64,000 nt of DNA from Eukaryota sp. TZLM1-RC (lineage: Eukaryota; Protista; Metamonada: BaSk clade): contig JAUPSS010000006.1 in assembly GCA_040285825.1 (NCBI GenBank), positions 310,001 to 374,000 of the forward strand, read 5' to 3'. The translations under genes and the position numbers were made by a program. Numbering within the stretch: the stretch's first letter is position 1; every line of letters starts with the position of its first letter. The notes under the pieces were generated by a model. It searched no databases and was not told where the DNA came from. It was given only the letters and a program-made list of their open reading frames with translations. This document shows, one piece after another, positions 2,421-64,000 of this stretch.

Positions 2421-2438
2421 TTGACTAAATTATATCAC

Positions 2439-5174: not shown

Positions 5175-5180
5175 AAAATG

Positions 5181-10100: not shown

Positions 10101-10109
10101 TCCAAATTG

Positions 10110-13354: not shown

Positions 13355-13364
13355 CTCTGAAATA

Positions 13365-16062: not shown

Positions 16063-16238
16063 AATAAATAAACCATAATTAGATTCGTGCTGATCAATAT
16101 CAAAATCAGTAATAGTGATTGATAAATGAGAAAACAATTAATTGAAACTAAATAAAAAAAATTTCCAGAATAATTGTTAAAAGAAGTGGTGATAACTACA
16201 AAAAAATAACACAAAAAAGAAAAAAAGAAGCAAAAAAT

Positions 16239-22800: not shown

Positions 22801-25800
22801 TTTCCTGGGGTAATTAATTCAATAGCAATGTCTCCATCAATTACTTTTTCAATTTTTCAATTTGCCATTCTCCATCAAAATAGTGGAAATTATTCTTCAA
22901 GTAAAAACCATTTCTTTCAGGTAATCCAAAGACGTGATGCTGACGTAAGAATTCTCTCAATTCTGGCCATCTATCTGATATTACTACATCCTTCAACATT
23001 TCAACAGGAACTTCTTGTTGTTCTTTTTAATGTTTGATATTTCCTCTCCAAAAAGTCTAGACAAACTAATTTCAATAATACAATAATTAATTTATCAAAT
23101 AACTGTAAATGATGCAAATGGTCAAATAGAGGCTACAATTCTAGTTGAGAACCCCTAATCACTGTTTTCTATTTTTCCACAAAGAAAACACCGACGCATT
23201 ACAACAGCTTGTGTATAAAAATTGGCTTCAATAGGGAATATGAGAACCATTCATTCGAAAATAGAATTAGTAAATTTCAAATAGTAAACCAAAACTGAAA
23301 GATTATGTTTGGTAGACGCGCGATCCGATTACAATCAATTTCTTGTTGGTACAAAAGAATTATGTCAAAACTTTGTTTTTATCATATGCCAAAAAGCACA
23401 ATTCTTTGTCAGATGCTTTTGGTGAGTTACATCATAATGATAATCATACATTTAACTTCATATTCAGAAGTGCTTTGATGGACTCAATTGAATTTCTCTT
23501 TTATTTAGAAAATTTAATGTATTTTCAAAAATGGTGTTTGAAACATTAGAATTTATTAAGATAAAAAAAGATCTTGATACCCCAAAGCAGTCAAAAAGAA
23601 ACAACTATTTTTGAAAATACAATCAAGAACTCAATATCTGCCAAAAAAGGAAGCGTCCACACCATCAAACCGTACAACAGCAATGTCTTTGTAATGTGCA
23701 TTGAAGCACATCAAAGCTTTTGAAATCATTTTAGGAATTGTTTAGAAAATAGTAAAATCACTACGATTTAACCACTAATGATGATCAAAACGCTTATTCA
23801 CTCTGTGTTTTTGAAATTTGCAAAATCATCAATAAAATTCATGGCAGTTTTTCCAGGACGTCCATACAAAGATATAGCATATGAAAGAGTTTCAATTTCC
23901 TGTTGCAATGAAATAAGATAAGAGCTGCCACAATTTTCAATGAGATGAATTTTTTCAGGAAAACGATTCACAAATTCATAAATAAAATTCTTTCCACCTC
24001 CAATAAAGGCAGCTTCACAAAGGTAGCTTGATTTATGAAAATCAACACCAACAAAATTTGTGCCACAAAAAATGTGGCTTCGTAACTGAGATGCATCAAT
24101 TTCCAATAATTTTGCTAAAAAATTGGTTCTTTGTTCATTAAAAATGCGACAAAACTCCAAAGAAATTGATGGCGATGTTGATCTCAAACTATGAGTAAAT
24201 TTTCCAGAATAACAGATTTTTAGGAAAAAGAATTTCAAATGTTTCTCAATATTTAAATTTCTATTGATTCTAATTCATTTCCAAATTGAGTCAACAGAGT
24301 CGAAAGTTGGCTTTTGACTTCATCAATATTTCCGAGATAACAACCCAAAAAACGAAAACCAGACTGATCATAATTGATAAAGGGGACATTGACATCATTA
24401 ATGAAAAAATCAATTGGTTCATGGCCAATAATCAAACATTTGGAGATATTCAATGAGAGACCAATATCTTCATAACGCTGTTGAAAAAAAAATGCTATTT
24501 GTTTCAGAATTTCAATAGGAACAATTACAGAAATGTCATCCATATATGCTACAATATCTATTTCTGGGAATTTTTCTTTCAATTCGCACATTAATGGATG
24601 AATTGCCAGACATAAGAAAAAAGAACCAAGTGGATCACCTTGTTTAACACTTGAAGGCGCAACATTGGACAATCCGCCTTGAATTTGATCAATGATTTTG
24701 ATAATTTATGTCGTTCAAGTGGTAAGAATTTTGCATGGATTTTATGGAAGAATTGTATTATTTTCGCTTTGTACAGAAGTGTGTTCAAGTACTTGAGTTT
24801 AATGATGTCCAAACTTTATAAGGATTCATCAAGAGTTGGCGTGGAGAATTTTGTTTCTTATGTGTTTCTTATGTGGAAAGACGTACACTATATATTTGTA
24901 TGTACGACATATCCAACAAACCATTTTGCATTTCTGAGCTGCTCTCTTTCTACATGAAGCTCTGAATTTGAGTCACGAATTTTATTTCTTGCTTTTATTT
25001 CGTTGATGCTAGACGAACTATCACAAAAAGCAAATATGCCAATCAACCGGTAAACCCAAATGCTGAGGTCTACGAATATAAAGGTTGTAGATTGTTTCTT
25101 GTGTCTAAAAGGTTTATCGAGATACATGAATAAGTCTTTATTTGCTACAATGGCCCTGGAATAATAATGGTTCTTTCTACTTTAGTCATCACATAATTAA
25201 ACCTTGAGTTAATAATTTTACCACCTCTTCTTTGGATAATGAAGAACAGTTATATCCTTTGTTGTGTTCTCTTATCTTTTTGTTCTTCTTCCATTCGTCG
25301 ATGAACTAATACTTTTGGCAACCAATTATTTGAATTTCCTGGGGTAATTAATTCAATAGCAATGTCTCCATCAATTACTTTTTCAATTTTTTCAATTTGC
25401 CATTCTCCATCAAAATAGTGGAAATTATTCTTCAAGTAAAAACCATTTCTTTCAGGTAATCCAAAGACGTGATGCTGACGTAAGAATTCTCTCAATTCTG
25501 GCCATCTATCTGATATTACTACATCCTTCAACATTTCAACAGGAACTTCTTGTTGTTCTTTTAATGTTTGATATTTCCTCTCCAAAAAGTCTAGACAAAC
25601 TAATTTCAATAATACAATAATTAATTTATCAAATAACTGTAAATGATGCAAATGGTCAAATAGAGGCTACAATTCTAGTTGAGAACCCCTAATCACTGTT
25701 TTCTATTTTTCCACAAAGAAAACACCGACGCATTACAACAGCTTGTGTATAAAAATTGGCTTCAATAGGGAATATGAGAACCATTCATTCGAAAATAGAA

Positions 25801-26613
25801 TTAGTAAATTTCAAATAGTAAACCAAAACTGAAAGATTATGTTTGGTAGACGCGCGATCCGATTACAATCAATTTCTTGTTGGTACAAAAGAATTATGTC
25901 AAAACTTTGTTTTATCATATGCCAAAAAGCACAATTCTTTGTCAGATGCTTTTGGTGAGTTACATCATAATGATAATCATACATTTAACTTCATATTCAG
26001 AAGTGCTTTGATGGACTCAATTGAATTTCTCTTTTATTTAGAAAATTTAATGTATTTTCAAAAATGGTGTTTGAAACATTAGAATTTATTAAGATAAAAA
26101 AAGATCTTGATACCCCAAAGCAGTCAAAAAGAAACAACTATTTTTGAAAATACAATCAAGAACTCAATATCTGCCAAAAAAGGAAGCGTCCACACCATCA
26201 AACCGTACAACAGCAATGTCTTTGTAATGTGCATTGAAGCACATCAAAGCTTTTGAAATCATTTTAGGAATTGTTTAGAAAATAGTAAAATCACTACGAT
26301 TTAACCACTAATGATGATCAAAACGCTTATTCACTCTGTGTTTTTGAAATTTGCAAAATCATCAATAAAATTCATGGCAGTTTTTCCAGGACGTCCATAC
26401 AAAGATATAGCATATGAAAGAGTTTCAATTTCCTGTTGCAATGAAATAAGATAAGAGCTGCCACAATTTTCAATGAGATGAATTTTTTCAGGAAAACGAT
26501 TCACAAATTCATAAATAAAATTCTTTCCACCTCCAATAAAGGCAGCTTCACAAAGGTAGCTTGATTTATGAAAATCAACACCAACAAAATTTGTACCACA
26601 AAAAATGTGGCTT
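19886..26613. repeat. Tandem triplication of a ~2.54-kb mosaic unit (starts 19886, 22427, 24961; third unit partial)
   Basis: Units begin TCTGAATTTGAGTCACG. Identical ORFs repeat, and differences are mostly homopolymer lengths. Confidence 0.95.
23450..24660 (-). mobile_element. CRE-like RT C-terminal half plus RLE-region remnants inside the tandem unit (also ~20920-22125 and partial ~25990-26613)
   Basis: SSVKQGDPLG..CLAIHP..IVAYMDDISV..GLSLNISKC..FRFLG, then LKICYSGKFTHSLRS, and YGRPGKTAMNFIDDF. Confidence 0.85.
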
Positions 26614-29492: not shown

Positions 29493-30354
29493 GTAAAAAG
29501 CTCAGCCTCTGCGGCCACTACTCCATCTGGAACCCCAAGGTACATGAAGCTGTTTCAAATGAATACGAACAGATTGACTATATCAGACCAGTTGTATGTT
29601 GTTCTCTTTATATGATCACAGATCAGAATCCGCAATTTCAGATGTTGCCGTGGGAAACGCCCCGGTGACACTGAATGGCAGATCAGCACTTCAGGATTAT
29701 CACAGTGGTGTATTATCTCCCGGAATGAAGAAACTGCCAGTGATATATATTCAGTTGGACTGTCATTGAGAGAATTGGACACCTCAGCCTGAACATAACA
29801 ATAACAGCAGGCTCGTTCAACCTTCTGCCAAAAAATCCATCTCAACCACAGTCCCATCTCAACCACAATCTAATGTTAATTCTCAATTAATTGGTTTGTT
29901 TTAATATAATTTAATCACAGAAATTCTCAAAAATCAGAATGAAATCCTGAACGATCTCACTGCTACCATTAAGGAGATGCATGCCAGCCTTGTCGAAGTG
30001 CATGTTTTAATAAAAAATTGAGCTCAACGAACAAAATCTGAGAACACCTCAAGCTACTCAAAAATGGGAGAGTCCTCCAAAACTCAAGTTGCCTAGACTA
30101 CCAAAGAACACAAACATTCTGCCTCCTCCAGTGAAAAGAGTTCATTTCACAACAATTCTTTGGCTACAATGATTCGGGACGTTATTGGTTTGCCATTAAA
30201 TCCCATTTAACCAACCGTTTTGTGATGAATGATCATACATCCAAGATTTCTGAGGAAAAATCATTAGCTCTATGAACTGGGGTTGTATTCTCATACTTAA
30301 TCTGGCTTTACTTTCCTTCATTATTAATTGTTGTAGTACATAAAGAAAATAGAA

Positions 30355-31340
30355 ATGAATTAATTTTGTTGAGGTAAAAAAAGAAATTCTCAAATTAATT
30401 CAGAAATAAAATTGTTGTAAGTATTAAACCTACAAATATCCAAAAACATGTAGACTATACAGACACACGTAATCAGATCTTTCTTGACCGTAATCAACTT
30501 CAAACAGTTGAAAACTGAATGATTTGTGATTACTCAGTCGTTTATGTATTTATGATTAGAGACTCAAAATAAAGAGAATTACTCTCAATATTTGGTAGAG
30601 ACTCTGAATGAGGAATAAATAAATTGAAATATAGATAAATAATGAACAATGAAATTCCAAAGAAATAAATGTTGGGAAATTGGTCTTGGATATAAGTAAA
30701 TCAATAAATAAAATTAAAGAATAATTTGAATTGAAATTGAAAATCCAAGGTTGAATGATTAGTATTGATAAATGGACCAAACTAATTGATGGAGCAAACA
30801 TTACATAAAAAAATTGACTGAAACAAACAATTTGTAAAAACATTCAATCAATTAGAATACTTTTGTGGGAAGAAATTACTCAACAAAATCAAATATCAAA
30901 AAAAAGCCGACAGATGAACCGACGTAAACAAGGTTAGGTCGGCCGACTTACCTGCTTGTGTTCAAGTCCCACTGTGTATCTTTTAATCTAAGTCGCATAT
31001 TGATTGAAAAACCGTCAGCGAGCAGACGACAGAAAGTGGAAGCACTCCCACCCACAAGAAACAGAAACAAGAAGAGAAAGAGTGACGGTGACCAAGAAAC
31101 GGAATGAGACTTCCAATGAGGAAATCTGGATGAAAGCTTTTGAAGGCAGAGTTCTGAGTAAGGGGAAGATGTAGCAATTTGAAAAGATAAGCGACGCAAT
31201 GGTGAGGATCATCATGAAGGTGCAAAGAAAAAAGTTGATGCCAGAGAACATTAGCGTCTACTGTCAGTAGTAGACAACGGGAAGCGCTAAGTGTGCCCAG
31301 AACTAAAATCCTCAATAGCGAAAGCGATACAATACCCTGT
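30355..31340. repeat. Core repeat copy 3 (30355-30605) plus linked tRNA-like and purine-rich modules
   Basis: Core, then GTCGGCCGAC palindrome with GTTCAAGTCCCAC (~30938-30972), then GGGAAGCGCTAAGTGTGCCC motif (~31280). Confidence 0.8.
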
Positions 31341-33169: not shown

Positions 33170-34690
33170 CCCTGCTTTAGTCATGTCAATACATAATTAA
33201 AATTATTTAAAATGAAGAAATACAAAATAAAGAAAATAAAAATGAATTAATTTTGTTGAAGAAAAAAAAGAAATCCTCAAATTAATTCAGAAATAAAATT
33301 GTTGTAAGTATTAAACCTACAAAGATCCAAAAACATGTAGACTATACAGACACATGTAATCAGATCTTTCTTGACCGTAATCAGCTTCAAACAGTTAAAA
33401 ACTGAATGATTGATGATTACTCAGTCGTTTATGTATTTATGACTAGAGACTCAAAATAAAGAGAATTACTCTCAATATTTGGTAGAGGCTCTAAATTTAA
33501 AAAAGAATCAAGTAGTTTTGGTTACTTCAAGGTAATCATCTGTGGTAGTTGAACCACAAACAAGAACAGTTTTTAAATAACCAAGTGTGCGGAGAATTGG
33601 TCTTGAAAACCAAATAACATTAAATGGAACCATTGTGATTATAATTTCAACAACAAAACAAATATTTTGCAAGTAAAATATTTGTAATGTAAAATTGAGT
33701 CCATAAAATTAATTGTTTAGAATTAACTTCGTTGAAACAAAAAACAGTTTCTACATGAAGACAAATTTTTTTACACAATTTGATAATTAAATGCAGCAGT
33801 TTCAATAATGATTAACTTTGCTGAAGTAATAGATGAACATGATGGCTCAACACGTCGATGATAACTCCAATTTGTATCAGCTAAATAATGACAACAATCA
33901 TTATTAGTGGTGATATAATTTAGTCAAAATTTGGAGTTTTGACATGGATATCACTTCTGAAACCAAAAACTTTCAACATTCTCAAATTCAACATCAGTCG
34001 TACCCAACATTGAATTAGTTGGAAAATAATGATTAGTTGAAGCATAAACTCGAGTTTTTCTAATGTTGACATCATTGGTAACAGTAGTTTGAGATTAGAA
34101 CAATTTGAAAGTTGAACAACGAAAAAACCAGCAAAAGAAGAAAAGATCACATGTCAGCTGACAAAGACCACTGAAGCAAATTGAAAATTCAAAACTTGAA
34201 CCAAAAGAACCCAATTAGGGTTCTGGGTTCGAGTCCCATGTACTTCCAAAAAATTACCCAACCTTCCACGTGTTGAACCTTTGACATTGATTGATGAAAT
34301 GGAATAGAACAACAGCTAGGGAATGCAAAATAAAAGATATCATGTACACCAACTGGAAGGAAAGTGGAGAATGTAGAGTTGAAGAGGAGTTATTGGAGGG
34401 AAGGAAAGGATAATATTTGAGATCAGAAAGCATGGGAGGACTTAGAGTAATGTCAGTAGTTTAAAAGAAGAGAGATGATTGAAGTTTTCACAGCATCATT
34501 CACATGGGAGGATGGTGTAGAACGATAGAAACCGTTAGAAGAACAAGGTGATGTAGGGAAAGCAGATAAAGTGCAAGAACTGAACCAGAATGAGGAGAGT
34601 TGGGTTGGCAAGGTTTCAGAGGATATCTTGAAAGCATTTCTGTAATGTTTTACTGTTTCAAACAGCAAATTCCGATTGATCGGGTTGACA
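33170..34690. repeat. Core repeat copy 4 (33240-33495) within a long family member; inverted paralogue ~49690-51345, direct paralogue ~59757-60690
   Basis: Shared LLLPxMSTLExLEFMLQLIIIFQLIQC translation; B-box at 34226-34236. Confidence 0.85.
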
Positions 34691-36234: not shown

Positions 36235-36940
36235 TTCCAATTTCCGATCGATCGGATTGACAAAAGGAATTAAATTTCTTCCAATAGAGAACCAGCAACT
36301 AAACGAGATGCCGTTAACGCTTGAGGTAACTTGAAACGTCCCAAGATAACACTATTAAATAAGAATGTTAAATCATCAGCGATTTCTGGGCATATGTTGA
36401 CAGCCGATTTCAAATGATCATAATTAAGTCCAAAAGGCCCAGCTGAACGACCAGACGGAAGTACTTTGATAGCTACACTAACTTCATCAGAAGTAATAGG
36501 ATTAGCAGTGAAGAAATCACGTGCAGCATCAGAACCAATGTGGATACAGGTTCAGAGACTGCTTCTTGGATTGGATAACATTAGCCTTCTTAAGAGGGGG
36601 AGTTGAAGTCGTTTTGGTAGCTTTAGGAGGCATGAAAAAAATTGGTTTTCTCAAATCACATGTTCCTATTAACGAGATGTTTAAGCACATGCCTCATATT
36701 GTTATAGATATTGTAAGGAATTGGCAAAGTCAACGTGGCCTCCTTCAATTAAAAGGGTTCACTTCAGTAATTGTTAGTTGTAGTATTTCTTTTATTCCAG
36801 AAAAGATCTTCGGTTTTAACAGATTAAAGGAGTTACAACCAATTTGGCCTGCTGGTCATGTAAAAAAGTCAAACATTCACAAAGATTTCCAATTCAAAAA
36901 AATTGGTCTTCTTCTCCTCAGAATGAAATATTAATTTCAA
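36235..36940. repeat. Direct duplicate of ~61215-61927; contains a CRE RT fragment (36293-36525, minus) and an inverted copy of ~13690-13865
   Basis: Minus strand reads PITSDEVSVAIKVLPSGRSAGPFGLNYDHLK..LTASRLVA. Same-start ORFs at 36521 and 61500. Confidence 0.9.
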
Positions 36941-37788
36941 TGATTTAAAAAAACCGTGATGAATGAAGGCTTCGATGGATGTTTGAGACCAAGCAGAGTA
37001 CTGCATCATTCATCACGTTCACCTACCAACATGGATTCAATATCTACGGGTAATCAAGGCCGATCTCATCCATCTAACCCTCCTATTCCAATGATGTCGA
37101 GGTATCTGGGAGTGTTCAACACACATATGATGCTCAAAAAAGTAAGTTCAATTTAAACAGAGAGTTTTATCGACAGGCACTGGAAAAACTTTATAGAATG
37201 ACTAAGAACGCTTCTGATAGAAACTTCCTGCTGAAGTGTACAATATACACATAATTAAGAGGTTCTACAGTTCCATAGTTTATTTTGAAGTTATGCAAAA
37301 TGATAGGGATTATCGTCAATGATAATGAAAATCTACAGTGTTATGTTGGAGGATATCTTGAACATCTGCAAAACTACAGTCAGAATTAAATACTAACTGA
37401 TGAGCAAGACTGTGTTTGTTAAAAAACTTATTACAACGATTGACACTACACAATTGACACTGCCACTGATGGGGGGGGGGAACTGATGTAACAGGTCTTA
37501 GTTTGATTCATCAAAAGTACAAACAGGTGTATGTGTACATAGAGAGGAGTTGAAAAGGATTCCATGTTGGAAGGTGAATTAGAGGTGACTCAGGTGGGAT
37601 ATACACATTAAAAAAGTTTAATTGCTGGAACAGTAGTACACCTTAAATGAAAATCACACAGAAGAGAATTTCACAAACACACATCTGGGGTTTTCTTGTG
37701 TAGTGCATAATTCATTTCTGAAATTCGTTCCACCACCAACAGTCCCGCCACCAATTTCTTCCTTTCTCCTACGACTCACAAACATATT

Positions 37789-38900
37789 AATGCCACACAA
37801 TTACGACTTCTTGATGGAACATGATGATATCAACTACTTAAAGGATCACCTCAACGATTTCGGTTCTGACGAACAATCTCATTTGAAAGCTCTGCGACTT
37901 CATGCTTCTGAGGATACTCGTGTTAGAGCTCTTTACACCTACTTCTACTTGAAGAAATCTCAAGCTGAGATCAGCCAATTTTTTTGGGTCAATCAGAGTA
38001 CTATTTCTAGATGGTTTACTGACCTTTTTGAAAGGAAAGACAAGGAGAAAAACAACTGTACGCCCATCCATTCCGACCCAAATTCACGTACGATATTGAA
38101 TGATAATGACATTCAGTATATCACACTGTTATTGAAGAAAAAGCCTTTGTTGTTTTTACGGGAAATTAAAAGAATAATTGAAAGAGAACTGGACAAAAAG
38201 GTTTCGATCTCAACGGTTCATCGTTGTCTTGTTGATCGGTGTAATTTCACCAGAAAAAAAGCAAGGAGAATGGTACAGCGAGCACGTCTCGATTTAATAG
38301 TTACCTTTTGCAACAATTTTAATAAATTTAATGGTGTTGTCGTACAAGAACAATTAGTATTTATTGATGAAGTGAGTTTTCGCGTTGACGATTTTCCAAG
38401 GAAGTACGTTCGATCCCCAAGTGGAAAAGAGGTTGTTTCGATACAGCCCCAATTCAAAGATGGGCTTGTTGGTTTTGTTGTAGCCATCACAGTTGATGGT
38501 TACCTTCTTTGTCACAACAGAAAAGGTCACCTTTCAAGATCCCTCTTCATTGATTTTTTGAAGGATTTATTGCGTAAAGGTTTACTTAGAACAACAGGAG
38601 GTAGACGCTCAATCATTATTTTAGATGGTTGTAAAATACACAAACATCCTTTTATTAATGAAGCAATGTGACGGACAGATGTACAATATAAAATACTCCC
38701 CCTATTGTCCCGAAATGAATCCAATTGAGGTGTTTTTTGGATTATTGAAAAAAAAAGTACAAGATTATTGTTTCAATAATCAACATACTGATCATGTGGA
38801 AGTCATTAATTATGTGTTAGAGACACAAATGTCCAACAATCTGGCACACATTTTTGATCATGCTGGTTGGCGAAATTTAAAACCCTACGATTCACCATAT
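37789..38900 (+). mobile_element. Tc1/IS630-family transposase (DD34E), one stop and one frameshift near the catalytic E
   Basis: HTH-like SQAEISQFFWVNQSTISRW; VSISTVHR; VFIDE; IILDGCKIH; YCPEMNPIEVFFG. D-34-E spacing if LPPY is restored at the C-run near 38700. No TIRs seen. Confidence 0.9.
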
Positions 38901-42090: not shown

Positions 42091-42298
42091 TTCGCCAAAT
42101 AATCGCTAATAATGCACCTCTTATTACCCTTGTTAAATCTATTGTTGATCTTGGTGATGTAGTTGTTGTTGGTTGTCATTCTCAATTTATTGTTGTTACT
42201 GATTCTTTTATTGATTTGGAAACTGTTCTTGTTTGTGGTTCAACTACCACAGATGATTACTTTGAATTAACCAAAACTACTTTGAATTTTTTAAATTT

Positions 42299-42536
42299 AG
42301 AGTCTTTACCAAATATTGAGAGTAATTCTCTTTATTTTGAGTCTTTATCAATAAATACATAAACGACTGAGTAATCATTAATCATTCAGTTTTTAACTGT
42401 TTGAGGTTGGTTACGGTCAAGAAAGATATGATTACGTGTGTCTGTATAGTCTACATGTTTTTGGATTTTTGTAGGTTTAATACTTACAACAATTTTATTT
42501 AATGAATTAATTTGAGGATTTCTTTTTTTACCTCAA
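42299..42536 (+). repeat. Dispersed core repeat, copy 5
   Basis: Same core sequence as 3262-3500. Confidence 0.95.
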
Positions 42537-49689: not shown

Positions 49690-51345
49690 TTTTTTGTCAA
49701 TCCGATCGATCGGAAATTTGAAACTGAAAAACTGTAAACATTACAGATATCCTTTCAAGATATCCTCTGAAACCGTGCCAACCCAACTCTCTTCATTTTT
49801 GGTTTAGTTCTTGGACTTTATCTGCTTTTCTTACATCACCTCCAATTACCTTGTTCTGCGATTGGTGTCTGTCGTTCTACACCATCTCCCTATGTGAATG
49901 ATGCTGTGAAAACTTCAGTCATTTCTCTTTTCTTTTGATCTACTGACATTACTCTAAGTCGTCTCATTTTTGTGATCTTATGAATTGTCCTTTCTTTCAC
50001 TCCAATCACTCCTCTCCGTCTCTATATTCTCAACTCTCCTTTCAGCAAGTGTACATGGTATCTTTTATTTTGCATTCTGTGGATGTTACTTCATTAAACT
50101 TTATCCATCCATGTCAAGGGGTCAATACATGGAAAGTTGGATTGGTGAATTTTTGAGAGTTCATGGGACTCGAACCCCGAACCTGGGCGAATTCAATTAT
50201 TTTGTTTTAACTTTTTAATTTCTTAAATTAAAGTTGGTTTTTTGGTCATGGTCAGCTGTCCTTTTTCTTTTTTTGCTGATATAACAATTTTCTACTTGTA
50301 ATTTTTTATGTTTAATGGACCATTTTCGTTTTCAAATTTATTTTGGAAATTATGTAAACTCAATCATTAAACAACCCATATTTCAACCATGAATCTAAAA
50401 TAAATCATTGATTAATGTACATGACTCAACGTTGGTTTTCACTATTGTTAAAACTCTAGGTTTAGTTAATTTTAATGGTGATGATGTAAGTAGATGTGCT
50501 ATTATTGAGATTTTTACACTTGCTGATTCTCATGTTGATTTCGGTCATGTAGTTGTTGGTTGCGAATTCAACCTATTGTTACCACTGATGTCAACATTAG
50601 AACAACTCGAGTTTATGCTTCAGCTAATCATTATTTTTCAACTAATTCAATGTTTGGTACGATTGATGTTGAATTTGAAAATGTTGAAAGTTTTTGATTT
50701 AAGAATTAAAATTCATGTCAAAAACTGCAAATTTTGACTAAATTATATCACTACTGATAAAGATTGCTGTCACCAGATTGCTGATTATACTATTGATTTA
50801 GTGAGTGCTTTTGATATCTATGGTCATTTTATACTCTTAAATTAATTACTCTTATAATGAATTTAATTATGATTAATGATGTGTTTCTGAAGTATCATTT
50901 CCATTTAAATTCAATGGTGAAATATGGTAAATTGATTTAAATTTTGTTTATCATGGGGTTTACTTCTTTGAAATTTTGATTTTAACATTGTGTTTTTTCG
51001 CTGATTTTTGTTGACTATTATTTTATTGGAATCTCTACCAAATATTGAGAGTAATTCTCCTTATTTTGAGTCTCTATTTATAAATACATAAACAACCGAG
51101 TAATCATCAATCATTCAGTTTTTAACTGTTTGAGGTTGGTTACGGTCATGAAAGATCTGATTACATGTGTCTGTATAGTCTACATGTTTTTGGATATTTG
51201 TAGGTTTAATACTTACAGCAAATTCAGTTATGAATTAATTTGAGGGTTTCTTTTTTTACCTCAACATGATTAATTCATTTTTTTCTATTATTTATTTTTA
51301 CATGTAAGATAGGTTTAATTATGAGATGACTAAAGCAGAATCGAT
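49690..51345. repeat. Long family member including core repeat copy 6 (51028-51280) and B-box (50166-50176)
   Basis: Inverted paralogue of 33170-34690 and 59757-60690. Confidence 0.85.
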
Positions 51346-52322: not shown

Positions 52323-53177
52323 CTAATTCTTCTGATTTCTATTACTACGTCTAGGCCGTTTAGGGGCGCTAGACTCGGTGGAAGGATCTCTTCTATTAGA
52401 AGTATGTTTGCCAACTTTTCTAATTCTCTTGTCTTTACTGAATAACTTATAAGCTTCTGAATGTTTTACTGAATTGAGAGGCTCTTCAGTTGTCTCACTG
52501 CCAAACCATTGAACAGTACAGAAACTACCTGAGTCAGAACTATACTCTGAGAGGATTTTCTCTATAACATGTTTTTCAGCATCGCCTGCTGCGACTGCCT
52601 TAAGGAATTCAAAATCCTGAGGATTCTCGGCGTTATAGACTTTACAATCTTTCTTAGCAGCCTTTAATTCGGAGCCAGTGGTAAGATTCTTTAATATTAA
52701 AGTAGAGTTGGAAGGATGATCTATTATTAAAAATGGTCCGTTCCAAGATCCATGTAATTTATTATTTTGTTTGGTTTTCCGAAGGACATAGTCACCAATA
52801 TTAAATACTATAAAACGCGAATTAGTATTATCTACTGAAATCGGAGTATTAAATGTTTGGTGACGCTCTGCTTCTTCCCTTTTTTCTTGTAGACGAATAT
52901 TTTTCAATTTAGTGCCATCTAATAAAGGAATATTGGAATCGAATTTTGATAAGTTTCCTACTATATTAGCAGGGTCTGATCTTGGACTAATCGAAGAACC
53001 GAACATGAGTTCGTATGGGGTAAAACCTGTTTTTCTGCTTTTAGTAGAATTTATTAATAGTTGGGATATGGGTACATAAGTAGACCAATTTCCATAATCA
53101 TTACAATCAATTAATAATTTCCTCAAGCATTGAAGAACGTCTCTAAGTTTACGTTCTACAAGTCCATTACTTTCAGA
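52323..53177 (-). mobile_element. Ty3/Gypsy integrase C-terminal half with GPY/F motif and chromo-like tail
   Basis: SESNGLVERK, TGFTPYELMFG, FNIGDYVL, WNGPFLI, VIEKIL..VQWFG. Confidence 0.9.
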
Positions 53178-54036
53178 GTAGTTGATGATCTTGGCTGCTG
53201 TGTGTTAGAATTCATACAGTATAGAGTAACAGAAGTGTAATTTATTACGAAGAGGAATTGTATTCTCTCTTCTTAAACTAATAGGCGGAATACTAATAAA
53301 CTATATAATAAAACTATAAATACTATTCAAGACTAACACTGCCTTTTTCTCTCTTTCGAGCGACGAGCCCTGGAAGCTCGAGTCACAGGAGGTGAACTAA
53401 TAGAATTGGTACGCTTCTTGGGAGGAGCGGATTTAGTACGGCAACGTGCTTTTGAAGTCTTGATAAAGTCTTTATACGCGGCAGTATTTTGGACTGTGGA
53501 CACGTGTTCAGTGGTGATCTCTTTTCCAGGCCATTGCACTTGGCAAAAGTCACCGTCCTGACTGAGCACCTTTTCTATAATGTGTTCTTCGACATCACCT
53601 GCAGCAACCCATGAGTGGAACTCATCGTAGGCAGGGAGGCTGGAGTGCCAGAGTGCTAAATGTTTGACGCTAGCTTGGACGATCGTACCGGTGCAGAGAT
53701 TCTTAATATTCACGGACGAATTGGATACGATTTTAGTAATTAGGAAAGGTCCTAAATAATCTCCATGTAGCTTAGTGGAGGAACTAGAAGCTCTCAATAC
53801 CAATTGACCAACTTCAAAAGGATTTGGAGTTGCAGATCTGGTTAGCTTGGAAGCTTTTGAAGCTTGATGGTGTGCTGCCTTTTCCTGTTTTTCTTTCAAC
53901 CTTCGAAATTTAGATTGAATTTCTTGTATAAAAGATGACTCAGACGTCGAGCTTTCAATGATTTCAAGAATTTTACCAGGGTCTGATCTAGGAGACACAT
54001 CTGAGCCAAAGATCACTTGGTATGGAGTGTGGTTTG
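53178..54036 (-). mobile_element. Ty3/Gypsy integrase C-terminus, PPT and ~160-bp LTR (53178-53338); continuation of the pol at 56382-58850
   Basis: NHTPYQVIFG..FEVGQLVL..YLGPFLI..IEKVL..VQWPG; AAAGAGAGAAAAAGGCAG then TGTTAG. Confidence 0.9.
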
Positions 54037-54561
54037 AATTGACAATATTACTGCCGCTTACAGAAGCAGCAGTTTCATCAGCCACTTTCTTCTCTGGACT
54101 GAGGAAATCAAATTCTGGAAACCAAAATTTTAAAAAATGATGGTTTTTACAAAAAGAATGTGTTTCCTCATATTCAACTGTTTTGACATATACTTTGGCA
54201 CTAAAATTAATTTTTTGTGTTCTTGCTAAATGTGAACTCAATTGAAGAACTATTTCACAAGAACTGTTCTGATCCATTAGTTTTTTCACTTCTGCCATCA
54301 GTATTTGCTTCCTTTTGTGATATTTGCTGGTCGTTTTTTTTGGAATCGTAATTTCTGTCTTAGGAGTTCAGTTCTGATGTGGAAAAGTTCTGAGAGGATA
54401 GGCTGGTATCAGTACCAGAACGGAGGCGGAGCATGTGTATTTATGTGGATACGAGGAGAGAAACCACTGATGCTTTGTCTGTGAAGGACGTGAAGTATGG
54501 GAAGAGGAGTTGAGGTAAAGCAAGGGTAAGTTAGTACAACTCAATAATCAACATTATTTTG

Positions 54562-55130
54562 CCACTCTATTATCAAGGCCAGTGCCTTGATACCTTAAAG
54601 CGTTGAGAGCTTCAGGTGTTACGCATTCAGCTAAGCCTCTAGGACTAATGCGCATGGCAGATCTGAAGAGATCCCATTCATGAATTGGTTCACTGAACCG
54701 TTGATCAGATGCCAGTTCTGCTGATCTAGCTAGTTCAAGTTCTTCGCGAAGTCTAGCAACTTCGCTGGCCAAAGCAACTTGGGCAGGATCCTCAATGTTG
54801 CCACGAGCCTCGTCTACAATTCTATCCGTACGACTCCAGAGGATAAACTTGTTAACAAACTTGAGGAGTTTATCAACGTCTCTTAAATCAGTCGCGTCGA
54901 GAGTTGGACGTTTGGGGCGGTCTCTGCGTCTATTGTCCCTATCTCTTGATCCCACCATGGAAGATAGGAGAAGGTTACTATCGTAAGTACCTGAGAAAGT
55001 AGAACGTGAAGAACTAACCGTGGAAGGTGTTGGTTGAGCCGCATGTTGTGAACTTGTTGAACCAGTGGAAGGAGGTGTGGGTGGAACCACTGACTTGCTC
55101 GCAGCAGCTTTTCTTTTAGGTAAATATTCC
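54562..55130 (-). mobile_element. gag-like N-terminal fragment
   Basis: RPTLDATDL..LKFVNKF..HEWDLFRS, similar to 41680-42018. Confidence 0.5.
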
Positions 55131-56381
55131 TTGATGGGCCCAGGAGACAGACCCTCAAATCTGCGTCTTCTTCTGCGTTGTTAAGGTTTACGAGTGGGAG
55201 CAGGTTTACGAGTGGGAGCAGGAGGAGCAGGAGGAGCAGGATCAACATCGTAAATTTCTGAAGATTCAGGATGATTGAGAATTTCAAAATTATTGGAGGC
55301 ATTGGCATTTACCTCATGAACATCTGGCAGGTCACCTATAGGATTGTCAGCACCAAAAAAAATATCAGGATTATGAATTTGAGCAGCAGAATTGGGAAAA
55401 ATATTTGCACGGTTATTACCAAAAGCAAAACTACCAGCATCGGATAAGCCAGGGGCAGCGGCATTGGGATAAAAACAGGGAGCAGCACGGACATCGGATA
55501 TTGGATTCTGGTGCCAAACCAAATATTTGGAGTCATCTATGATGTTCTCCAATATTGGCTTATTGGTTGCTGGATTAATAAAAGAAATATTTGTATGTTC
55601 ATATTGTTTCAACAGGTTGCTATTTGAAGTTAATAAGCGAACCTTGATGCCTTCTTTTTCAGCATATTCGAGAACAGATTTCTCGAGCCTACGTCTGTAT
55701 GTGTTGGAGTAATTGGCTTTGGGTTTACGTAAGTGTCGCGTAGATTCCCAATCTGCTGTTTTTATAATGGGAAGGGAGTCATGGGGAATGACCCAAGAAG
55801 ACTGATTCAAAACCTGAATTGTAGTGGTACCGGAGAGTGTCCCTTGGTGAGTCAAGTTTTTCATTGTGATCATTGTTTGAACCCTGTCGTTCCTAAATGA
55901 CCACAATAAAATTCCACTTTCCGATGCTTTTACTATTAAAAAAGCATCATCTAAAATGATAAATGATGTACTAGTCGATTTTCTTTCAATATTAAAACAA
56001 TCTGTTTCTTTCTTTTTTTGTACATATTTTATTTAGGATTAAATTTCGTAATACTTTCCTTGTTATAAATAAAAAATAAAATCATTTTTACTATTTTTAT
56101 TGTTATAAATAAATAGATTACTTAATTAAAATATCTATATCTTTAAATACGTCACAAAATTCTTTAAAGGTATTTGACTTTTTATCTTATTAGAAGCTCT
56201 TATAATAAGATAAAAAAGAGTTGCATGCAGTCTTTATGTACTAGATGTGATCAACTTGTGATCAAATTTTGTGTGAAATTTTGTGTGAATAATGTTGGCT
56301 ATGTGTTACTTGGTCAATACATACTCATGATTACATTTTCAATTGATTTTGTATATATTTGAATTAATAGTGTTTATTAAT

Positions 56382-58850
56382 TGTGGTTTGTTATCGAACT
56401 CTTGGAAGAGTTGATTAATAATTGCACATAAGGCAAATATTCAGACCACACATCGTAGGCGTTGAAGTCTACGAGCAATTTCCGTAGGTTTTGCAGAATG
56501 TCTCTGTGTCGGCGCTCTACCAGGCCGTTGGACTGAGAAAACCTAGGTATTGACTTTGACACCTCTATGCCCAAAAATTTGCTTAGTTCGTCAAAGACAG
56601 CCTTGGAAAATTCGGGTCCATTATCGCTGTGGATTTGAAATGGAATACCAAAGATGGCACAGACTTTCCAAATTAATGCATCTGCAGTAAGATTGGCATT
56701 TATCTCTTTTAAAGGCACGATGATCGTGAACCTAGAAAAGCTGTCAATAAATACAAGGATGTATTTGTAGCCTTCTTGATCTTCAGGAACAGGACCAATA
56801 ACGTCGGCGTTGACGCGAGCAAAGGGTCTGTCAGCCCACAATGAACCGGTTGGGGGAACATGCAGTTTGGGAACTGGCTTTGTTTTCTGACAGGAGGGGC
56901 ATTCTTGGACGTGCTTATTCATGTCAGTGAGCATGTTTGGCCACCAATTATCGCTATTCCTGAGCTTGTTCAGGCTTTCAGCTTTGCTTGGATGGCCTCC
57001 TTGCAGAAGTCCGTGCAACAAGTTAAGAGTGTCCTTAATGAGTGATTTGCGAATCACTATCTTTTTGTCGTGAGTCATGTATAAATCAAGATGATTGTTA
57101 TGAACACTGTTGTTGAAAGAGGGGTCTTTGGAAGCTTTGGCAAGCTTCTGTTCCGACCTAATCCTACAGAACGATGGCTCAAAAATAGGGAGGTCGTTGG
57201 AACATCGTTCTTTGTTGACCATGATACGCTCGAAGTTGTTTAAATCTTCTATGTAGTATCTTTCGTTTTCTGTTCCATCTATTTTATCGATATAAAATAT
57301 TGGATGAAAATTTGGAGACATTTGATGGGACAAATGATTGATCTCTTGATGGTCTATAGGCGGAACTATTCGAGACAACATATCAGCCCAGAAGTTATCT
57401 TCCCCTTTGGTGTGTACCAATTCAAAGCAGAATTCAGAGAAAATGGGTAACCATCTGGTTACAATTCTGTTCTTGTCTGGAGCTGTGAACATGTAGGTAA
57501 GGTTTTGATGGTCTGTGAATATGACCAGTTTCCTTCCTTTCAAGTAGTTTTCGAAACCACTTTGTGTCAACATCAGTAAGATGGCATAGAGTTCCTTTTG
57601 GTTTGTCGGCCAGTTCTTTTGCGAGTTGGTTAACAAGCGGCTAAAGAAGCTGATAGGCCTACATTTTCTGTTGATCAGGGGAGTACCGGGGTCGTCGACT
57701 TGTTCGATTTGTTCCCATATCACGCCGCCTACAGCAATGTCGGATGCGTCGCAACTTATTAAAATTTGATTTTCCAGTGGAGGTAAGTTGAACGGCATGT
57801 GCTGAGCTATCAGTTGTTTGATCTATTGAAGGAGTCCGTCATGCATGTTGGTCCATTGTAGGCGTTGCGCGCGGGGTTTGGGTTTAATGTTGGCGTTGTT
57901 CCCAACCTTCTTAGTCAATCTGATGATAGGAGCAATGAGCTCAGATACCTGAGGAAGCCATTCTCTAATGAAGTTGACTGATCCTACGAGGCTGCGGACG
58001 TCTTTGATTGTCTTTGGTCTAGGAAGATTCAACAAAGATTCAACACGAGTGGGATCGATGGTCCGTTGTTTGTTTTGGAAAACACTGCCCAGTATCTTGA
58101 TGGGGTGTCTGGAAGACACGAAATGGCACTTTGGAAGTCCCAAGGAAACTCTTTTGCATCTGGCTTGATCAAGGACGCGGCGGAAGCGCTCGATGAATTC
58201 GTCAAAGGTTGAACCTATGATTATGAAGTCATCTATATAGATGAATACACCCTCTCCAGAGAAGATGTCAGCCATGACGTTTTGGAAAACGGCTGGGACA
58301 TTTTTGAGGCCAAACGCTGCACGTTTAAACATGATGCTTTTACCAAGAATGCTCAGGGCTGTTTTGTGCCAGTCCTTTTCAGCAATTTTGAGTTGCCAAA
58401 AGGCTTGGGGGGGGGGGGGTCGAGGGTGCCTATGTAGTTTGCTTGGGAGAGAAATACTAGCACATCGGAGATCCTTGGAAGGTTGGGCTCAACAGGAATG
58501 GTGTTGGCGTTGACTCCGTCCTTGCCACTATAATCACCAGTAAGGCGGGGCTTACAGTGATCTGGGTAGACCACTAGACAGACAGGGGAGCTGAACTCGT
58601 GGTTCGATGGAACAGCAAATCCAGAGTCTACGAGTTCGTCGAAAATTTGGTTAGCGACCTCTAGCCTGGCTGGATTCAGGGTCCTGGGGGGTTTTCTAAC
58701 TCTGACGTCTTCATTGTAGAAGTTGATTTCCATGGGATTGGTGGGCAAACCAATCTTTCGCCTACTAATGCACAAGGAGAAGTCGGGAGCCATTGGTATC
58801 TCACATGCCATGTCCGGATTACTCCAATACTTTGCAAAACCCACCAGGTT
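56382..58850 (-). mobile_element. Ty3/Gypsy pol (RT-RNase H-integrase), frameshift at G-run ~58406-58418 and one in-frame stop at 57823
   Basis: SPVCLV..PRLTGDY; FGLKNVPAVFQ; YIDD; CDASDIAVG; KELYAI; FTDHQNL; HHCC-type H..GH..CPSCQ; DVIGP / SDNGPEF / NGLVER. RT-RH-IN order. Confidence 0.95.
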
Positions 58851-59756
58851 TCTGGTTAGTGCTTTCAATAGCCTATTGTAATGTAAACGGTATTGGTGGT
58901 CCATGAGAATGGGGATATACGTCAAGATGCAATTTCACCTATATTACTCTAATGATCTTAATGCTTTTTCCATGTTAATCCTTCCTGACGTTCTCTTGCT
59001 GAACAATGTTAGTCTTTCATCCAGCAGCTGATCTACACCCATATTTCAAAAGAAGGAAATGAACCATTGTATTTGATTGTATGTTGTGTTGTACATGGAT
59101 ACATAAATCAGTATTGGTATTTATTTTTGTTTCAACATTTTGTCAACACTAGTCAACAATTGGCAATGTTCCAATTATCGGGGTTAATGCTCAGATTTAG
59201 CAAGACATTGTATTTGGATATAATTGTATACTATGACATGACTACTGCAATTGTGTTTCTTGTATCTGAAGAACAAATGCAACATTTTATAGATTTACAT
59301 GGTATTTATAGTTTTGTATATTTGATAAATAAACAAGGTTGTAATAGTCTTTATTATTGAAGAGTATTAAAAAACCAAGTATTAGCCTAGAAATAGGCTA
59401 TTCATATCCTTACAGGTGATAGGCCCATATAAATAGGCCCAGATAGATGTTTGTTTAATAAATTTTTAAAGTTTTACACCTCAAGTTTTACACTTCAAAG
59501 AATAAATAACAATAATTGTATGATGATAGTATTATAAAGGTTTAAAATATTTACGTTAACGTTTTTAATGGTATGAAGAGAAAAAATAGCAGCTGAATTC
59601 AAAAATATCAGTAGTTTGTCAATTATTTGGTTGTGAGGATGATAGAAGTTTTGTTAATGGTTAATTCTAACGGTTCATTTGTTGATATTTATATAACATC
59701 CGAAATCTACACATTTTTTTGTTGAAAACTTTTATTATATTTTAATTAAAAAAACA

Positions 59757-60690
59757 CCTGCTTTAGTCATGTCAATACATAATAAAAATTATATAAAATG
59801 AAGAAATACAAAATAAAGAAAATAAAAATGAATAAATCATCTTGAGGTAAAAAAAGAAACCCTCAAATTAATTCATAAATGAAGTTGTTGTAAGTATTAA
59901 ACCTACAAAGGTCCAAAAACATGTAGACTATACAGACACATGTAATCAGATCTTTCTTGACCGTAATCAAGCTCAAACAGTTAAAAACTGAATGATTGAT
60001 GACTATTCAGTCGTTTTTGTTTTTACTGAGTGATTCAAAATAAAGAGAATTACTCTCAATATTTGGAAGAGACTCCAATAAATTAGTAGTAAACAAAAAT
60101 CAGCGAAAAAAAAACAAAATTAAAATCAAAAACTTAAAGAAATAAACCTTATGATACTTATCATTTAAACAAATTTACCAAATGTCATAATTGAATTTAA
60201 TTTAAACTGATATTTCAGAAACATAGCAATAATCATAGTCAAATTAATTTTGGTTTGTAAAAAATATACATAAAAAACTACAAGTAAAAAATTGAAATAA
60301 CAGCAAAAAAAGAAAAGGGACAGATGATTAAGACCAATAAAGCAACTTTATTTTAAGAATTTAAAGAGTTTAAACAGAATAACTGAATTCGCCTAGGTTC
60401 CGGGTTCGAGTCTCATGAACTCTCAAAAATTAACCAACCCAACTTTCCATGTATTGACCCCTTGACATGGATGCATAAAGTTTAATGAAGTAACATCCAT
60501 GGAATGCAAAATAAAAGATATCATGTACACCAACTGGAAGGAAAGTTGAGAATATAGAGACGGAGAGGAGTGATTGGAGTGAAAGAAAGGATATTACTTG
60601 AGATCAGAAAGCATGGGAGACTTGAGGTAATGTCAGTAGTTCAAAAGAAGAGAGATGGCTGAAGTTTTCACAGCATCATTCACATAGGAA
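59757..60690. repeat. Long family member with core repeat copy 7 (59825-60076) and B-box-like motif (60403-60413)
   Basis: Paralogue of 33170-34510. Confidence 0.85.
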
Positions 60691-61926
60691 TGTTAACTGT
60701 GAACGTCAACTGACCATGACCAATAAAGCAAATTAAAAATTAACTACTTTAGGCAAAATGACTGAGTTTGCCTAAATAATCAATAAATAAAAAACAAAAA
60801 TTAAATAAATAACTAAAGAATCTAATCAGCATGTAAAATTAATGCAATATGTGTTTGCCATTTCAATGACACATCAACACAATCAAAATCATCCATCGGG
60901 TTCGAGTGCCACTATGCTACTGTCAATTCATGTCAAAATTTTGCAGATGAGAGCAGACCAGAATAATTCATTGAAGAGGTGGTGAGTTCAACGGAGATTC
61001 ACATCACTAGGAAGAGATGCGGTGAAGATGGTGAGCACAGATAGAAATTGTCATCAAAAGTTCAGTAAGAGATCTGGTATTTATGGAGATTGGGGGTGAA
61101 GGACGGTGATGCAAGCAAGTAAAAAGAGCCAAAACTAACCATAAGAGAGTTGGGTTGGCAAGGTTTCAGGGGATATCTGGAAAGGATATCTGTAATGTTT
61201 ACAGTTTTTCTGTTTCCAATTTCCGATCGATCGGATTGACAAAAGGAATTAAATTTCTTCCAATAGAGAACCAGCAACTAAACGAGATGCCGTTAACACT
61301 TGAGGTAACTTGAAACGTCCCAAGATAACACTATTAAATAAGAATGCTAAATCATCAGCGATTTCTGGGCATATGTTGACGGCCGATTTCAAATGATCAT
61401 AATTAAGTCCAAAAGGCCCAGCTGAACGACCAGACGGAAGTCCTTTAATAGCTACACTAACTTCATCAGAAATAATAGGATTAGCAGTGAAGAAATCACG
61501 TGCAGCATCAGAACCAATGTGGATACAGGTTCAGAGACTGCTTCTTGGATTGGATAACATTAGCCTTCTTAAGAGGGGGAGTTGAAGTCGTTTTGGTAGC
61601 TTTAGGAGGCATGAAAAAAATTGGTTTTCTCAAATCACATGTTCCTATTAACGAGATGTTTAAGCACATGCCTCATATTGTTATAGATCTTGTAAGGAAT
61701 TGGCAAAGTCAACGTTGCCTCCTTCAATTAAAAGGGTTCACTTCAGTAATTGTTAGTTGTAGTATTTCTTTTATTCCAGAAATCTACAAATGATCTCTTC
61801 GGTTTTAACAGATTAATGGAGTTACAACCAATTTGGCCTGCTGGTCATGTAAAAAAGTCAGACATTCACAAAGATTTCCAATTCAAAAAAATTGGTCTTC
61901 TCCTCAGAATGAAATATTAATTTCAA

Positions 61927-63198
61927 TGACAGACACTTGAATTTATTTTATTTTATTGTGAAGCCCAATTTAAAGAAAACAAATTATTGTTGTTGCAGAT
62001 TATTTTATCCCACAGAGTTGCCAAAATTCACAAAAAAATTATTGCATCAAAGCTGTGAGAAACAGATTATTAACAACACCATTATAACCGTTGACGTTAA
62101 TCTTCAATTTTGTCAGCAATATATTTATTAGAATTTTTAAAATTGATATAATTATATGAATTAATTTTAATAACTTTGTAATACGTTTATATTTATTTAT
62201 TTTTTTATATCTCATCACTATTCTTAAACATTTTTAATATTTTTGATTCTATTTATCAAATATCTATTCATCCTTAATCTATTTGTTAAGTTAATTCTGA
62301 AATCTTGGATTATTTGTAGGGTAATAACAAACTAAATGATGAATTTCTTATTGGAGTTAAACGTGCCTTCAGAGAGAAACGTCTATATATCTCTGGTCTC
62401 TCCTCCATTGGGAAAACCACTGTTGTGCGTCTTTTGCAAAAAGTTTGTAATTATTTTTTATTAAGTTTAGGCTGGTCTCCAAGTTTACTTAACTCCCGAT
62501 ACCGGTAAATTTGAGAATTTTTGCAACTAAAAATCTGATGTTTGTGTTGCAGATGAACCCAACAGAGTCGAAACCAAAGGTATTGCTCATTGGCTAGCTT
62601 GGCTAGATGAAGGGTTTGAATTTTCTTACTAATCACAGATCAATTAATGTTAATGCTCGGAATCACAACGTTCAAAAATACCAAAAGTTACCCACTGTTT
62701 TTCTCTCAAATTTGTCAATTAATGAAACTCCGCACGTCCATTAACGATAAAACTAACAGCCAATTGATGGACATTTTTATATATATTTGGATTGATAAGT
62801 TTAATACGAGTAATAAGAAACTGGTGATGATGTTTTCGATTTGGAAAATGTATTTGTAAACAAGGTCAATAGACTTGAATCCTCAATTTAATCAAAACAG
62901 CTTTTGGCAAACACGCCCCCCCCCCCCCGCAATAAGGACGAAGCCAGTTAAAAGGTCCTTTTGAAAGCTCTAGAGAGAATTCTAGACGTAGTCGACCCAA
63001 ATCCTCATAGCAATGGTGTAGCTCATGCAAAACCAACAAACATCCTGAAGAAAAATGTTGTAAAATGCTGGGAAGACCTGGTTCAAAAAGTAATATCAAA
63101 AGCGTCGGGGGGGAGGGGGGGGGGGCGATAAACGTGATAGAAAACGTAGTACAAATAAATCAGATGAATACACATCTTTTTATAATAATCTTACACAC
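61927..63198. repeat. Right arm of long inverted repeat (partner 1-1247)
   Basis: See left arm. Confidence 0.95.
62341..62744 (+). pseudogene. SF3 helicase (CRESS Rep/NS1-like) fragment with introns 62443-62470 and 62614-62638
   Basis: EKRLYISGLSSIGKTTVVRLLQK^AGLQVY..N*KSDVCVADEP..WLDEG^SINVNARNHNVQKYQKLPTVFLSN. Confidence 0.72.
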
Positions 63199-63339
63199 AA
63201 TTCAATCAACACCATTTATACAATGAGCAAAATTGATACAAATTATAGACACCTCAATCCGTTAAAAAGATTTAGAGAGTCGTCCAATCCTGTCGGTTCT
63301 ATCCACAGTGCTAGACTATCCAGGGTGACAGGCAACTAA

Positions 63340-63447
63340 ACAAGTTCTAACGGGGAACTTTGGTTGAAATGTTCAATAAACAACGTGGAAGTAAAGGGCG
63401 AAATTGATAATGGAGCTGCATTCTCAGCATTATCAATGGTTGATTAA
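63340..63447 (+). mobile_element. Retroviral-type aspartic protease fragment
   Basis: LWLKCSINNVEVKGEIDNGAAFSALS (DxGA motif). Confidence 0.6.
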
Positions 63448-63784
63448 ATATCCATTGAAAAATGTTGCTAAATTTAGAAAATAACCAACAATACTAGGCA
63501 AATCAGTTTCTTCAAGACATCCAATAGTTGATCAACAACCACCATTACAATTAGTTTCAATTATAAGGAGAGTCCTCCAAAGGAGAGTGAACTTCCCGCT
63601 GAGAGAAGTCAGAAAGAAAGTGACCTTCCCCATAAAGAGAGTGATCATCATGTTGAGGATGACTCAGAGTTGTACAACCTTCGAAACAGCCTGAAATTAT
63701 TAATTATTGTGTGGGATATTTGGGGCGTCTGATTATTCTGTCATGGCGTGTTCTAATAAGATAAAAAAGTCAGATACCTTCAAA

Positions 63785-64000
63785 GAATTTCGTGACGTAT
63801 TTAAAGATATAGATATTTTAATTAAGTAATCTATTTATTTATAACAATAAAAATAGTATAAAAATGATTTTATTTTTTAATTATAACAATGAAAGTATTA
63901 CGAAATTTAATCCTAAATAAAATATGTACAAAAAAAAGAAAGAAACAGATTGTTTTAATATTGAAAGAAAATCGACTAGTACATCATTTATCATTTTAGA
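63785..64000. repeat. Inverted duplicate of ~55952-56165 AT-rich block
   Basis: GAAAATCGACTAGTACATCATTTATCATTTTAGA vs TCTAAAATGATAAATGATGTACTAGTCGATTTTC. Confidence 0.9.

Follow-up and report, generated by a model that had tools for sequence, protein, structure and literature searches.

Skoliomonas strain TZLM1-RC is a free-living, haloalkaliphilic and anaerobic metamonad protist that has been little studied (PMC11603281), and nothing useful on transposons of this genus turned up in the literature. The stretch analyzed here, hereafter the window, is a 64-kb segment of its genome (contig JAUPSS010000006.1, positions 310,001–374,000) with a G+C content of 34.7% and a dense load of repeats, segmental duplications, and transposable element (TE) fragments. 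It contains a Ty3/Gypsy retrotransposon remnant whose integrase-coding region is interrupted by a 2,345-bp patchwork insert (54037–56381, minus strand), bounded on both sides by a perfect 9-bp target-site duplication (TSD). For comparison, ten further loci were fetched, giving with the window a DNA sample of ~250 kb; one of these loci, L002, overlaps the window (its positions 1–9924 match window 54077–64000 at 100% identity) and extends beyond it. Protein searches covered a library of 5.8 billion sequences (word-indexed search) and a library of 1.84 billion representatives (exhaustive HMMER search). The Gypsy pieces were compared one by one throughout; no sequence joining or repairing them was constructed or used as a query.

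The host of the insert is a minus-strand pol region that encodes, in this order, reverse transcriptase (RT), RNase H, an integrase zinc-binding domain, and an integrase core, and that is collinear with the pol of an intact relative in locus L004. Pfam places RVT_1 on the open reading frame (ORF) at 57823–58332, and RT_RNaseH, Integrase_H2C2, and rve on the ORF at 56377–57798. The upstream part of the host (56382–58737, minus strand) extends from RT to the integrase core and corresponds to residues ~195–976 of the L004 pol; the C-terminal part (residues ~976–1208) occupies 53182–54036 on the same strand, together with the 3′ long terminal repeat (LTR; 53182–53338, minus strand, TGTTAG...CATCA). 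The ORF at 56377–57798 ends two codons inside the insert, and the integrase C terminus resumes at the other copy of the duplicated 9-mer, within the ORF at 53333–54298. Homology to all relatives ends at 58737, marking a 5′ truncation; no gag, protease, or 5′ LTR of the host was found within 16 kb past this point, and of its LTRs the 3′ one alone survives. The pol region also carries an in-frame stop codon (57823–57825) and a frameshift near 58362–58407. Because of the truncation, the stop, and the frameshift, the host is nonfunctional whatever the insert does. The first-pass annotation of this DNA, made from the sequence without database searches, had proposed that excision restores the reading frame: this is true locally, as both 9-mers stand in one codon phase, but the element would remain dead for these other reasons.

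The intact reference element (L004 8104–15518) has 149-bp LTRs (TGTTAG...CATCA) that are 98.7% identical, a 4-bp TSD (AATT), pol, and a long gag that is covered by gene models of 582, 344, and 164 amino acids. The nearest relative of the host (L002 15940–19649) lies ~15 kb beyond it on the opposite strand and is itself scrambled: its order is LTR, leader, a 115-bp bit of gag, 1.3 kb of fragments of other repeats plus unmatched sequence, and lastly pol, beginning at the end of the RT domain, with most of gag, protease, and RT replaced by the unrelated repeat fragments and unmatched sequence. The LTR pair of this copy is discordant (77.5% identical), as is that of the copy in L005 (78.7%).

The 9-mer TGTGGTTTG is found at 54028–54036 and again, identical and in the same codon phase, at 56382–56390. 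It occurs exactly twice in the window, a count that is not significant by itself (chance alone predicts 0.97 matches, and 26 of 100 shuffles contained two or more). The repeat is nevertheless a true target duplication because uninterrupted copies of the family run through the site with one 9-mer. Three such copies of the same Gypsy family cross it unbroken: L002, with its single 9-mer at 18798–18806 (one base different) and flank identities of 95% and 92%; L004, with its 9-mer at ~14671–14679 and flank identities of 94% and 91%; and L005, with its 9-mer at 14476–14484, flank identities of 93% and 87%, and flank alignments that overlap by exactly 9 bp. In L002, the two flanks match as window 56382–57562 to 18806–17623 and window 53183–54034 to 19649–18800. 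At the protein level, a tblastn search with the L004 pol places residues 914–976 at 56563–56384 and residues 976–1208 at 54032–53334. When the pieces are compared with the paralogous ORF at 52323–53126, the upstream one stops at residue 33 and the downstream one begins at residue 36, with the duplicated Asn-His pair being residues 34–35. The insertion and its perfect 9-bp target duplication are thus confirmed. The TSD and the collinearity with the paralogous ORF, both proposed in the first-pass annotation, are borne out by these comparisons. It had also named a possible refutation, namely, that the two integrase halves belong to different subfamilies. This failed, since both halves share the same order of relatedness (closest to L002b and about equally to L004, furthest from L005) and so derive from one lineage.

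Both outer junctions are blunt, with no microhomology between insert and host when the sequence is read directly. Among four indels in other paralog pairs, none had a clear duplication, although the script used for this count overlooks cases where matches intervene. A chimeric read or a misjoin during assembly, for which the highly repetitive nature of the region might provide an opportunity, is a highly improbable origin of the insert, in that a misjoin would neither give a perfect 9-bp target duplication nor resume the flanks at the exact base and in the exact codon phase.

The insert is composed of at least five segments, all read here on the minus strand, in the order p1, p2, p2b, p3, a short filler, p4, and p5. 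Its two ends, p1 (56196–56381, 186 bp) and p5 (54037–54143, 107 bp), are unique in the ~250-kb sample. Segment p2 (55435–56195) consists of an AT-rich leader and the N-terminal part of an orphan reading frame, termed orfA, and is 95.3% identical to L002 9675–10439 and L001 9674–10439. The orfA frame continues through p2b (55094–55434), which is also unique in the sample and has an in-frame TAA (55181–55183) within an 18-bp tandem repeat. Segment p3 (54575–55093), the origin of which was not recognized in the first-pass annotation, is a mid-gag stretch of the host's own Gypsy family, oriented like the host pol; it shares 97.5% identity with L004 10172–10692 and 81% with L007 10148–10665, where the end points are the same, and corresponds to residues ~58–231 of the gag protein P0003. 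Its match falls from high identity to none at both ends. Between p3 and p4 lie 13 nt (54562–54574) that are read as filler; should they represent a diverged p4 start instead, a 2-nt microhomology would be left between the two segments. Segment p4 (54144–54561) is a repeat whose only relative found (window 10107–10526, 96.2% identical) is located 44 kb away in the window; no match to an annotated protein family was found for p4, and a protein search with the p4/p5 reading frame gave no candidates. The boundaries between segments are abrupt, with identity dropping from 95–97.5% to none, and the orfA and gag parts share one reading frame, both sense relative to the host pol (minus strand).

The first-pass annotation had described at least four unrelated pieces, three of them duplicated within the window. 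The three duplications are real: 54144–54561 at 96.2%, 55651–55918 (matching 12536–12269) at 97.0%, and 55950–56195 (matching 64000–63751 and running off the window end) at 96.4%. The mosaic likewise stands, but the latter two pieces form one contiguous unit, since 55435–56195 is collinear with L002 10439–9675 at 95.3% identity. Between the in-window relatives of p4 and p2 lies an ORF with RING and B-box zinc fingers (11181–12038, minus strand), apparently a fragment of a host gene amid repeats. The possibility that p4 is an LTR, suggested by a minus-strand TGTTGA near its start and a CCATCA just past its end in p5, was not supported, as the homology to its sole relative begins before the TG and there is no partner LTR.

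The orfA part of the insert spans ~1.07 kb, and its family is known only from a 180-kb neighborhood. Its protein homologs are limited to P0001 and P0002, both encoded on this contig at ~322–486 kb, and no homolog outside this genome was found in either protein library. The orfA-gag frame was queried as two separate pieces because it holds a stop. There is no Pfam match to orfA, and an AlphaFold2 model of it is uninformative (pLDDT 36). A reading of orfA as a variant N terminus of gag was discarded: the 97.5% identity to L004 vanishes entirely at a single point, and motifs that all sampled gag copies share upstream are missing. At two other sites, an orfA fragment is positioned 0.5–1.3 kb upstream of a Gypsy integrase C terminus and LTR, all in one orientation (window 12269–12536 followed by 13061–13362, and L002 9675–10439 followed by 11704–12564); this layout echoes that of the insert site and may reflect either coincidence or shared history.

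Automated annotation has converted parts of this locus into genes. The ORF at 53333–54298 (minus strand, 321 amino acids) is chimeric, beginning in p4 and reading into the integrase C terminus. An NCBI gene model of 611 amino acids (L006 4576–6551) likewise starts in p4, crosses the C terminus of the host integrase, and is spliced onto the integrase C terminus of another Gypsy fragment (52323–53126, minus strand); this model is an annotation artifact of TE debris. ORFs within the insert are annotated by NCBI as hypothetical proteins of 230 and 134 amino acids.

At the junction of p1 and p2, the insert contains a palindrome (56179–56216) with 18-nt arms (56179–56196 and 56199–56216) that match at 17 of 18 positions around a 2-nt loop. 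It is located exactly where homology to the p2 copy in L002 and L001 stops; its outer arm (56199–56216), inside p1, is the reverse complement of the first bases of p2 and is missing from that copy. No other hairpin of such quality occurs in the 64-kb window, and none was obtained in 20 shuffles. A palindrome of this kind is the trace left when a polymerase product snaps back on itself and is extended, and short inverted duplications templated by such foldbacks have been documented at breaks in yeast (PMC11724301).

This boundary bears on whether the insert arose stepwise, with some element having a 9-bp TSD inserted first and later overwritten through many events of nested insertion and deletion. 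The setting is compatible with such a history, given that the window is a dense TE graveyard of nested fragments with segmental and tandem duplications and that other copies of the family, such as L002 15940–19649, are scrambled internally. However, three adjacent fragments would need to have been truncated at both ends within 2.3 kb, with the 9-mers and flanks left untouched, and no segment has a TSD or element ends of its own. Furthermore, the palindrome points to polymerase switching rather than to insertion plus deletion, and segments that are just 2.5–5% diverged from their relatives leave little time for many events. Stepwise decay is regarded as quite unlikely.

Both insert ends were inspected for the signatures of known mobile elements. 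An inverted-repeat search (seed 6, minimum length 10) found no terminal inverted repeat (TIR) linking them, so the earlier observation that no TIR is visible also holds at low stringency. A 27-nt inverted match at 70% identity (56355–56381 against host 56414–56440) was dismissed as an AT-rich chance similarity, the other relationships of the insert being at least 95% identical. Neither the LTR termini of the family (TGTTAG...CATCA) nor internal direct terminal repeats were found in the insert, which also lacks any tRNA or Rfam match. The first-pass annotation had suggested looking for the same 2.35-kb composite at other sites: no second copy of p1, p2b, or p5 exists in the ~250-kb sample, an exact-protein lookup located the 230-amino-acid gene model of the insert at one place only, and no library protein spans any insert junction.

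These findings weigh on the suggestion, also made in the first-pass annotation, that the 9-bp TSD recalls Pack-MULEs. Under that explanation, a nonautonomous Mutator-type transposon without recognizable TIRs would have gained repeat fragments and then hopped, possibly locally, into the Gypsy copy. The length of the TSD agrees with the 9–11 bp range of Mutator-like elements (MULEs) (PMC3310237), the mosaic of gained fragments resembles Pack-MULE cargo, the unique p1 and p5 could be termini, and the nearby donors suit acquisition followed by short-range hopping. On the other hand, MULE TIRs are typically 100–500 bp long and critical for transposition (PMC3310237), and none joins the ends of this insert; no second unit or end copy was found in the ~250-kb sample; the recognizable cargo is TE-derived, without host-gene fragments; and Pfam hits to a Mutator-type transposase are absent, both for the window ORFs and for the called genes of the ten loci. 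Of the points in its favor, the TSD length is the one that remains, and a Pack-MULE-like origin is unlikely. The sole DNA-transposase signature seen in the window is at 37703–38671 (plus strand), where an ORF combines helix-turn-helix motifs with a transposase domain of the DDE_3 (Tc1/IS630-like) type; no other DDE transposase was seen among the window ORFs and the called genes of the ten loci. In addition, called genes of 249–310 amino acids in L007 (17824–19673), L008 (13392–14141), and L009 (14342–15091) show weak Pfam matches to the TnpB zinc ribbon (Cas12f1-like_TNB) and may, judging from these domain matches, encode Fanzor/TnpB-like nucleases in Skoliomonas.

In a more speculative variant, skoliomonad metamonads would possess a TIR-less mobile element that has not been described, or a capture pathway, and the insert would be a member of the former or a product of the latter. 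The element or pathway would use a 9-bp stagger to cut its targets, carry patchworks of retroelements and local repeats, and represent a protist counterpart of Pack-type transduplication, with the 186-bp and 107-bp ends serving as recognition sequences. This idea is considered improbable.

The main rival explanation is a chimeric retrocopy produced by the RT of a non-LTR retrotransposon (long interspersed nuclear element [LINE]), which is judged rather unlikely. By this route, target-primed reverse transcription would have started from a plus-strand nick after 54036, the RT would have jumped across p5, p4, Gypsy gag RNA, orfA RNA, and p1 with one snap-back, and a second nick 9 bp away would have generated the duplication. 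Snapping back at the end of a template is classic behavior of RTs. The sense orientation of both orfA and gag and the geometry of the insert suit cDNA synthesis from 54037 to 56381, and a short flanking direct repeat, together with one-orientation head-to-tail fusion, defines the bipartite and tripartite chimeras made by LINEs (PMC2104539). A LINE-like RT ORF is also present in the window (18117–19673, minus strand), encoding 518 amino acids; its product has an RT domain and, at the N terminus, zinc knuckles, and its best PDB matches are R2 and LINE-1 ORF2p. This identifies it as a non-LTR retrotransposon of this metamonad, the copy being cut right after the ORF. RT fragments of a second family, ~40% identical, are located at 36294–36518 and 61273–61497. 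In contrast, neither insert end has a poly(A) stretch, an A-rich tail, or a recognizable 3′ end of a LINE or a short interspersed nuclear element (SINE), no LINE fragment of the sample is matched by p5 or p1, and all LINE copies seen are broken. The 9-bp repeat is shorter than the 10–20 bp quoted for such chimeras (PMC2104539). Moreover, the confinement of the orfA family to 180 kb is unexpected, since RNA-mediated copies should land genome-wide.

The explanation tentatively favored here, with confidence somewhat short of even, is that the insert is a one-off, nonmobile patchwork assembled at the DNA level through template switching, with the product sealed into a break that had a 9-nt stagger. 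It is favored because of the local donors, the snap-back, the blunt outer junctions, the single copy, the absence of transposon ends, and the abrupt boundaries between segments. In this scenario, a break with a 9-nt stagger would have arisen in the integrase-coding region of a Ty3/Gypsy copy that was in place and decaying by then, or else a polymerase engaged in replication or repair would have left its template and returned 9 nt behind the point of departure. Before sealing, the polymerase would have copied or captured stretches of other repeats through at least four template switches, drawing on the orfA repeat of the 180-kb neighborhood, the relative of p4 located 44 kb away, and gag of the host family; at one switch, its product would have folded back and served as template for 18 nt. 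The perfect 9-bp duplication would then result from filling in of the stagger. The joining would accordingly have been the work of repair or replication rather than of a transposase or an RT. The stagger itself could, for instance, be due to a transposase that generates 9-bp TSDs: in one version of the scenario, such an enzyme would cleave or excise, and filler repair would follow between the retained duplications. For end joining, the capture at breaks of various fragments, retrotransposon DNA among them, has been documented (PMC11372161, PMC1976456).

Several observations weigh against this DNA-level patchwork. Filler or captured DNA at breaks normally lacks a clean 9-bp target duplication, segments of 0.4–1 kb are long for filler, and no nuclease or transposase making a 9-nt stagger was identified. 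Both orfA and gag are oriented as the host pol, which fits RNA templates slightly better, although such an arrangement would arise by chance about one time in four. No donors for p1, p2b, and p5 were found in the ~250-kb sample, and the argument from donor locality rests on annotated proteins plus this DNA.

The surroundings of the insert are heavily rearranged. Large inverted and segmental duplications, 96–98.7% identical, occur within ~180 kb of the contig, and include window 1–1247 against 61927–63198, window 59757–64000 against L001 5681–9924, and window 5776–6357 plus 11912–14095 against L003 9186–11962. The intervening 5.55 kb (window 6358–11911) is missing from the L003 paralog, and neither a clear TSD nor LTRs were found for this segment. 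A tandem duplication with a period of ~2,541 bp spans 19886–26613 (19886–24080 against 22427–26613, 99.4–99.6% identical). A ~270-bp repeat family has seven copies in the window that are 85–95% identical (3259–3530, 15840–16068, 30340–30604, 33224–33494, 42297–42536, 51029–51294, and 59813–60097), with no obvious TIR or TSD found.

As a natural example, the insert is clean: the empty site is available for comparison, the duplication is perfect, one junction preserves a snap-back, and some of the donors have been identified. It shows how repeat-rich regions are reshuffled in the Skoliomonas genome, and it cautions annotators, as NCBI gene models turn TE debris into hypothetical proteins, including the 611-amino-acid chimera. 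The case would matter more only if the same ends recurred genome-wide with 9-bp duplications of their own; otherwise, it is a modest curiosity concerning DNA repair or template switching.

Among known systems, filler and templated insertions at breaks (PMC11372161, PMC11724301, PMC1976456) are, like the insert, patchworks in which unrelated pieces of genomic and retroelement DNA are joined bluntly or with minimal overlap; they also share with it a foldback inverted duplication at a junction, the single copy, the absence of transposon ends, and possibly nearby donors. The insert differs in the length of its segments (0.1–1.07 kb, 2.3 kb in total) and in its clean 9-bp target duplication. LINE-made chimeras, such as MINE and WEIRD-SINE-LINE in Magnaporthe and U6-L1 in mammals (PMC2104539), likewise fuse several unrelated parts head to tail in one orientation (read here for orfA and gag) between short target repeats. 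In contrast to these chimeras, the insert has no recognizable LINE or SINE 3′ part and no A-rich tail, comprises no fewer than five parts where they have two or three, is flanked by 9 bp rather than 10–20 bp, and draws on one source family that is confined to the neighborhood. Pack-MULEs and other Mutator-like elements (PMC3310237, PMC5861414) have in common with it the 9-bp TSD and an inner mosaic able to create chimeric ORFs, whereas the insert lacks TIRs, no family of copies or Mutator-type transposase was found for it in the ~250-kb sample, and its cargo is repeat-derived. A nested LTR-retrotransposon insertion would resemble it in being situated in a Gypsy pol and in containing Gypsy gag, yet the insert has neither LTRs nor TG...CA ends, and its TSD is 9 bp as opposed to the 4 bp of the element in L004. 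Viewed against these systems, the event is of an ordinary kind, a complex insertion in TE debris, and what sets it apart is the perfect 9-bp duplication around a mosaic that has neither TIRs nor a tail.

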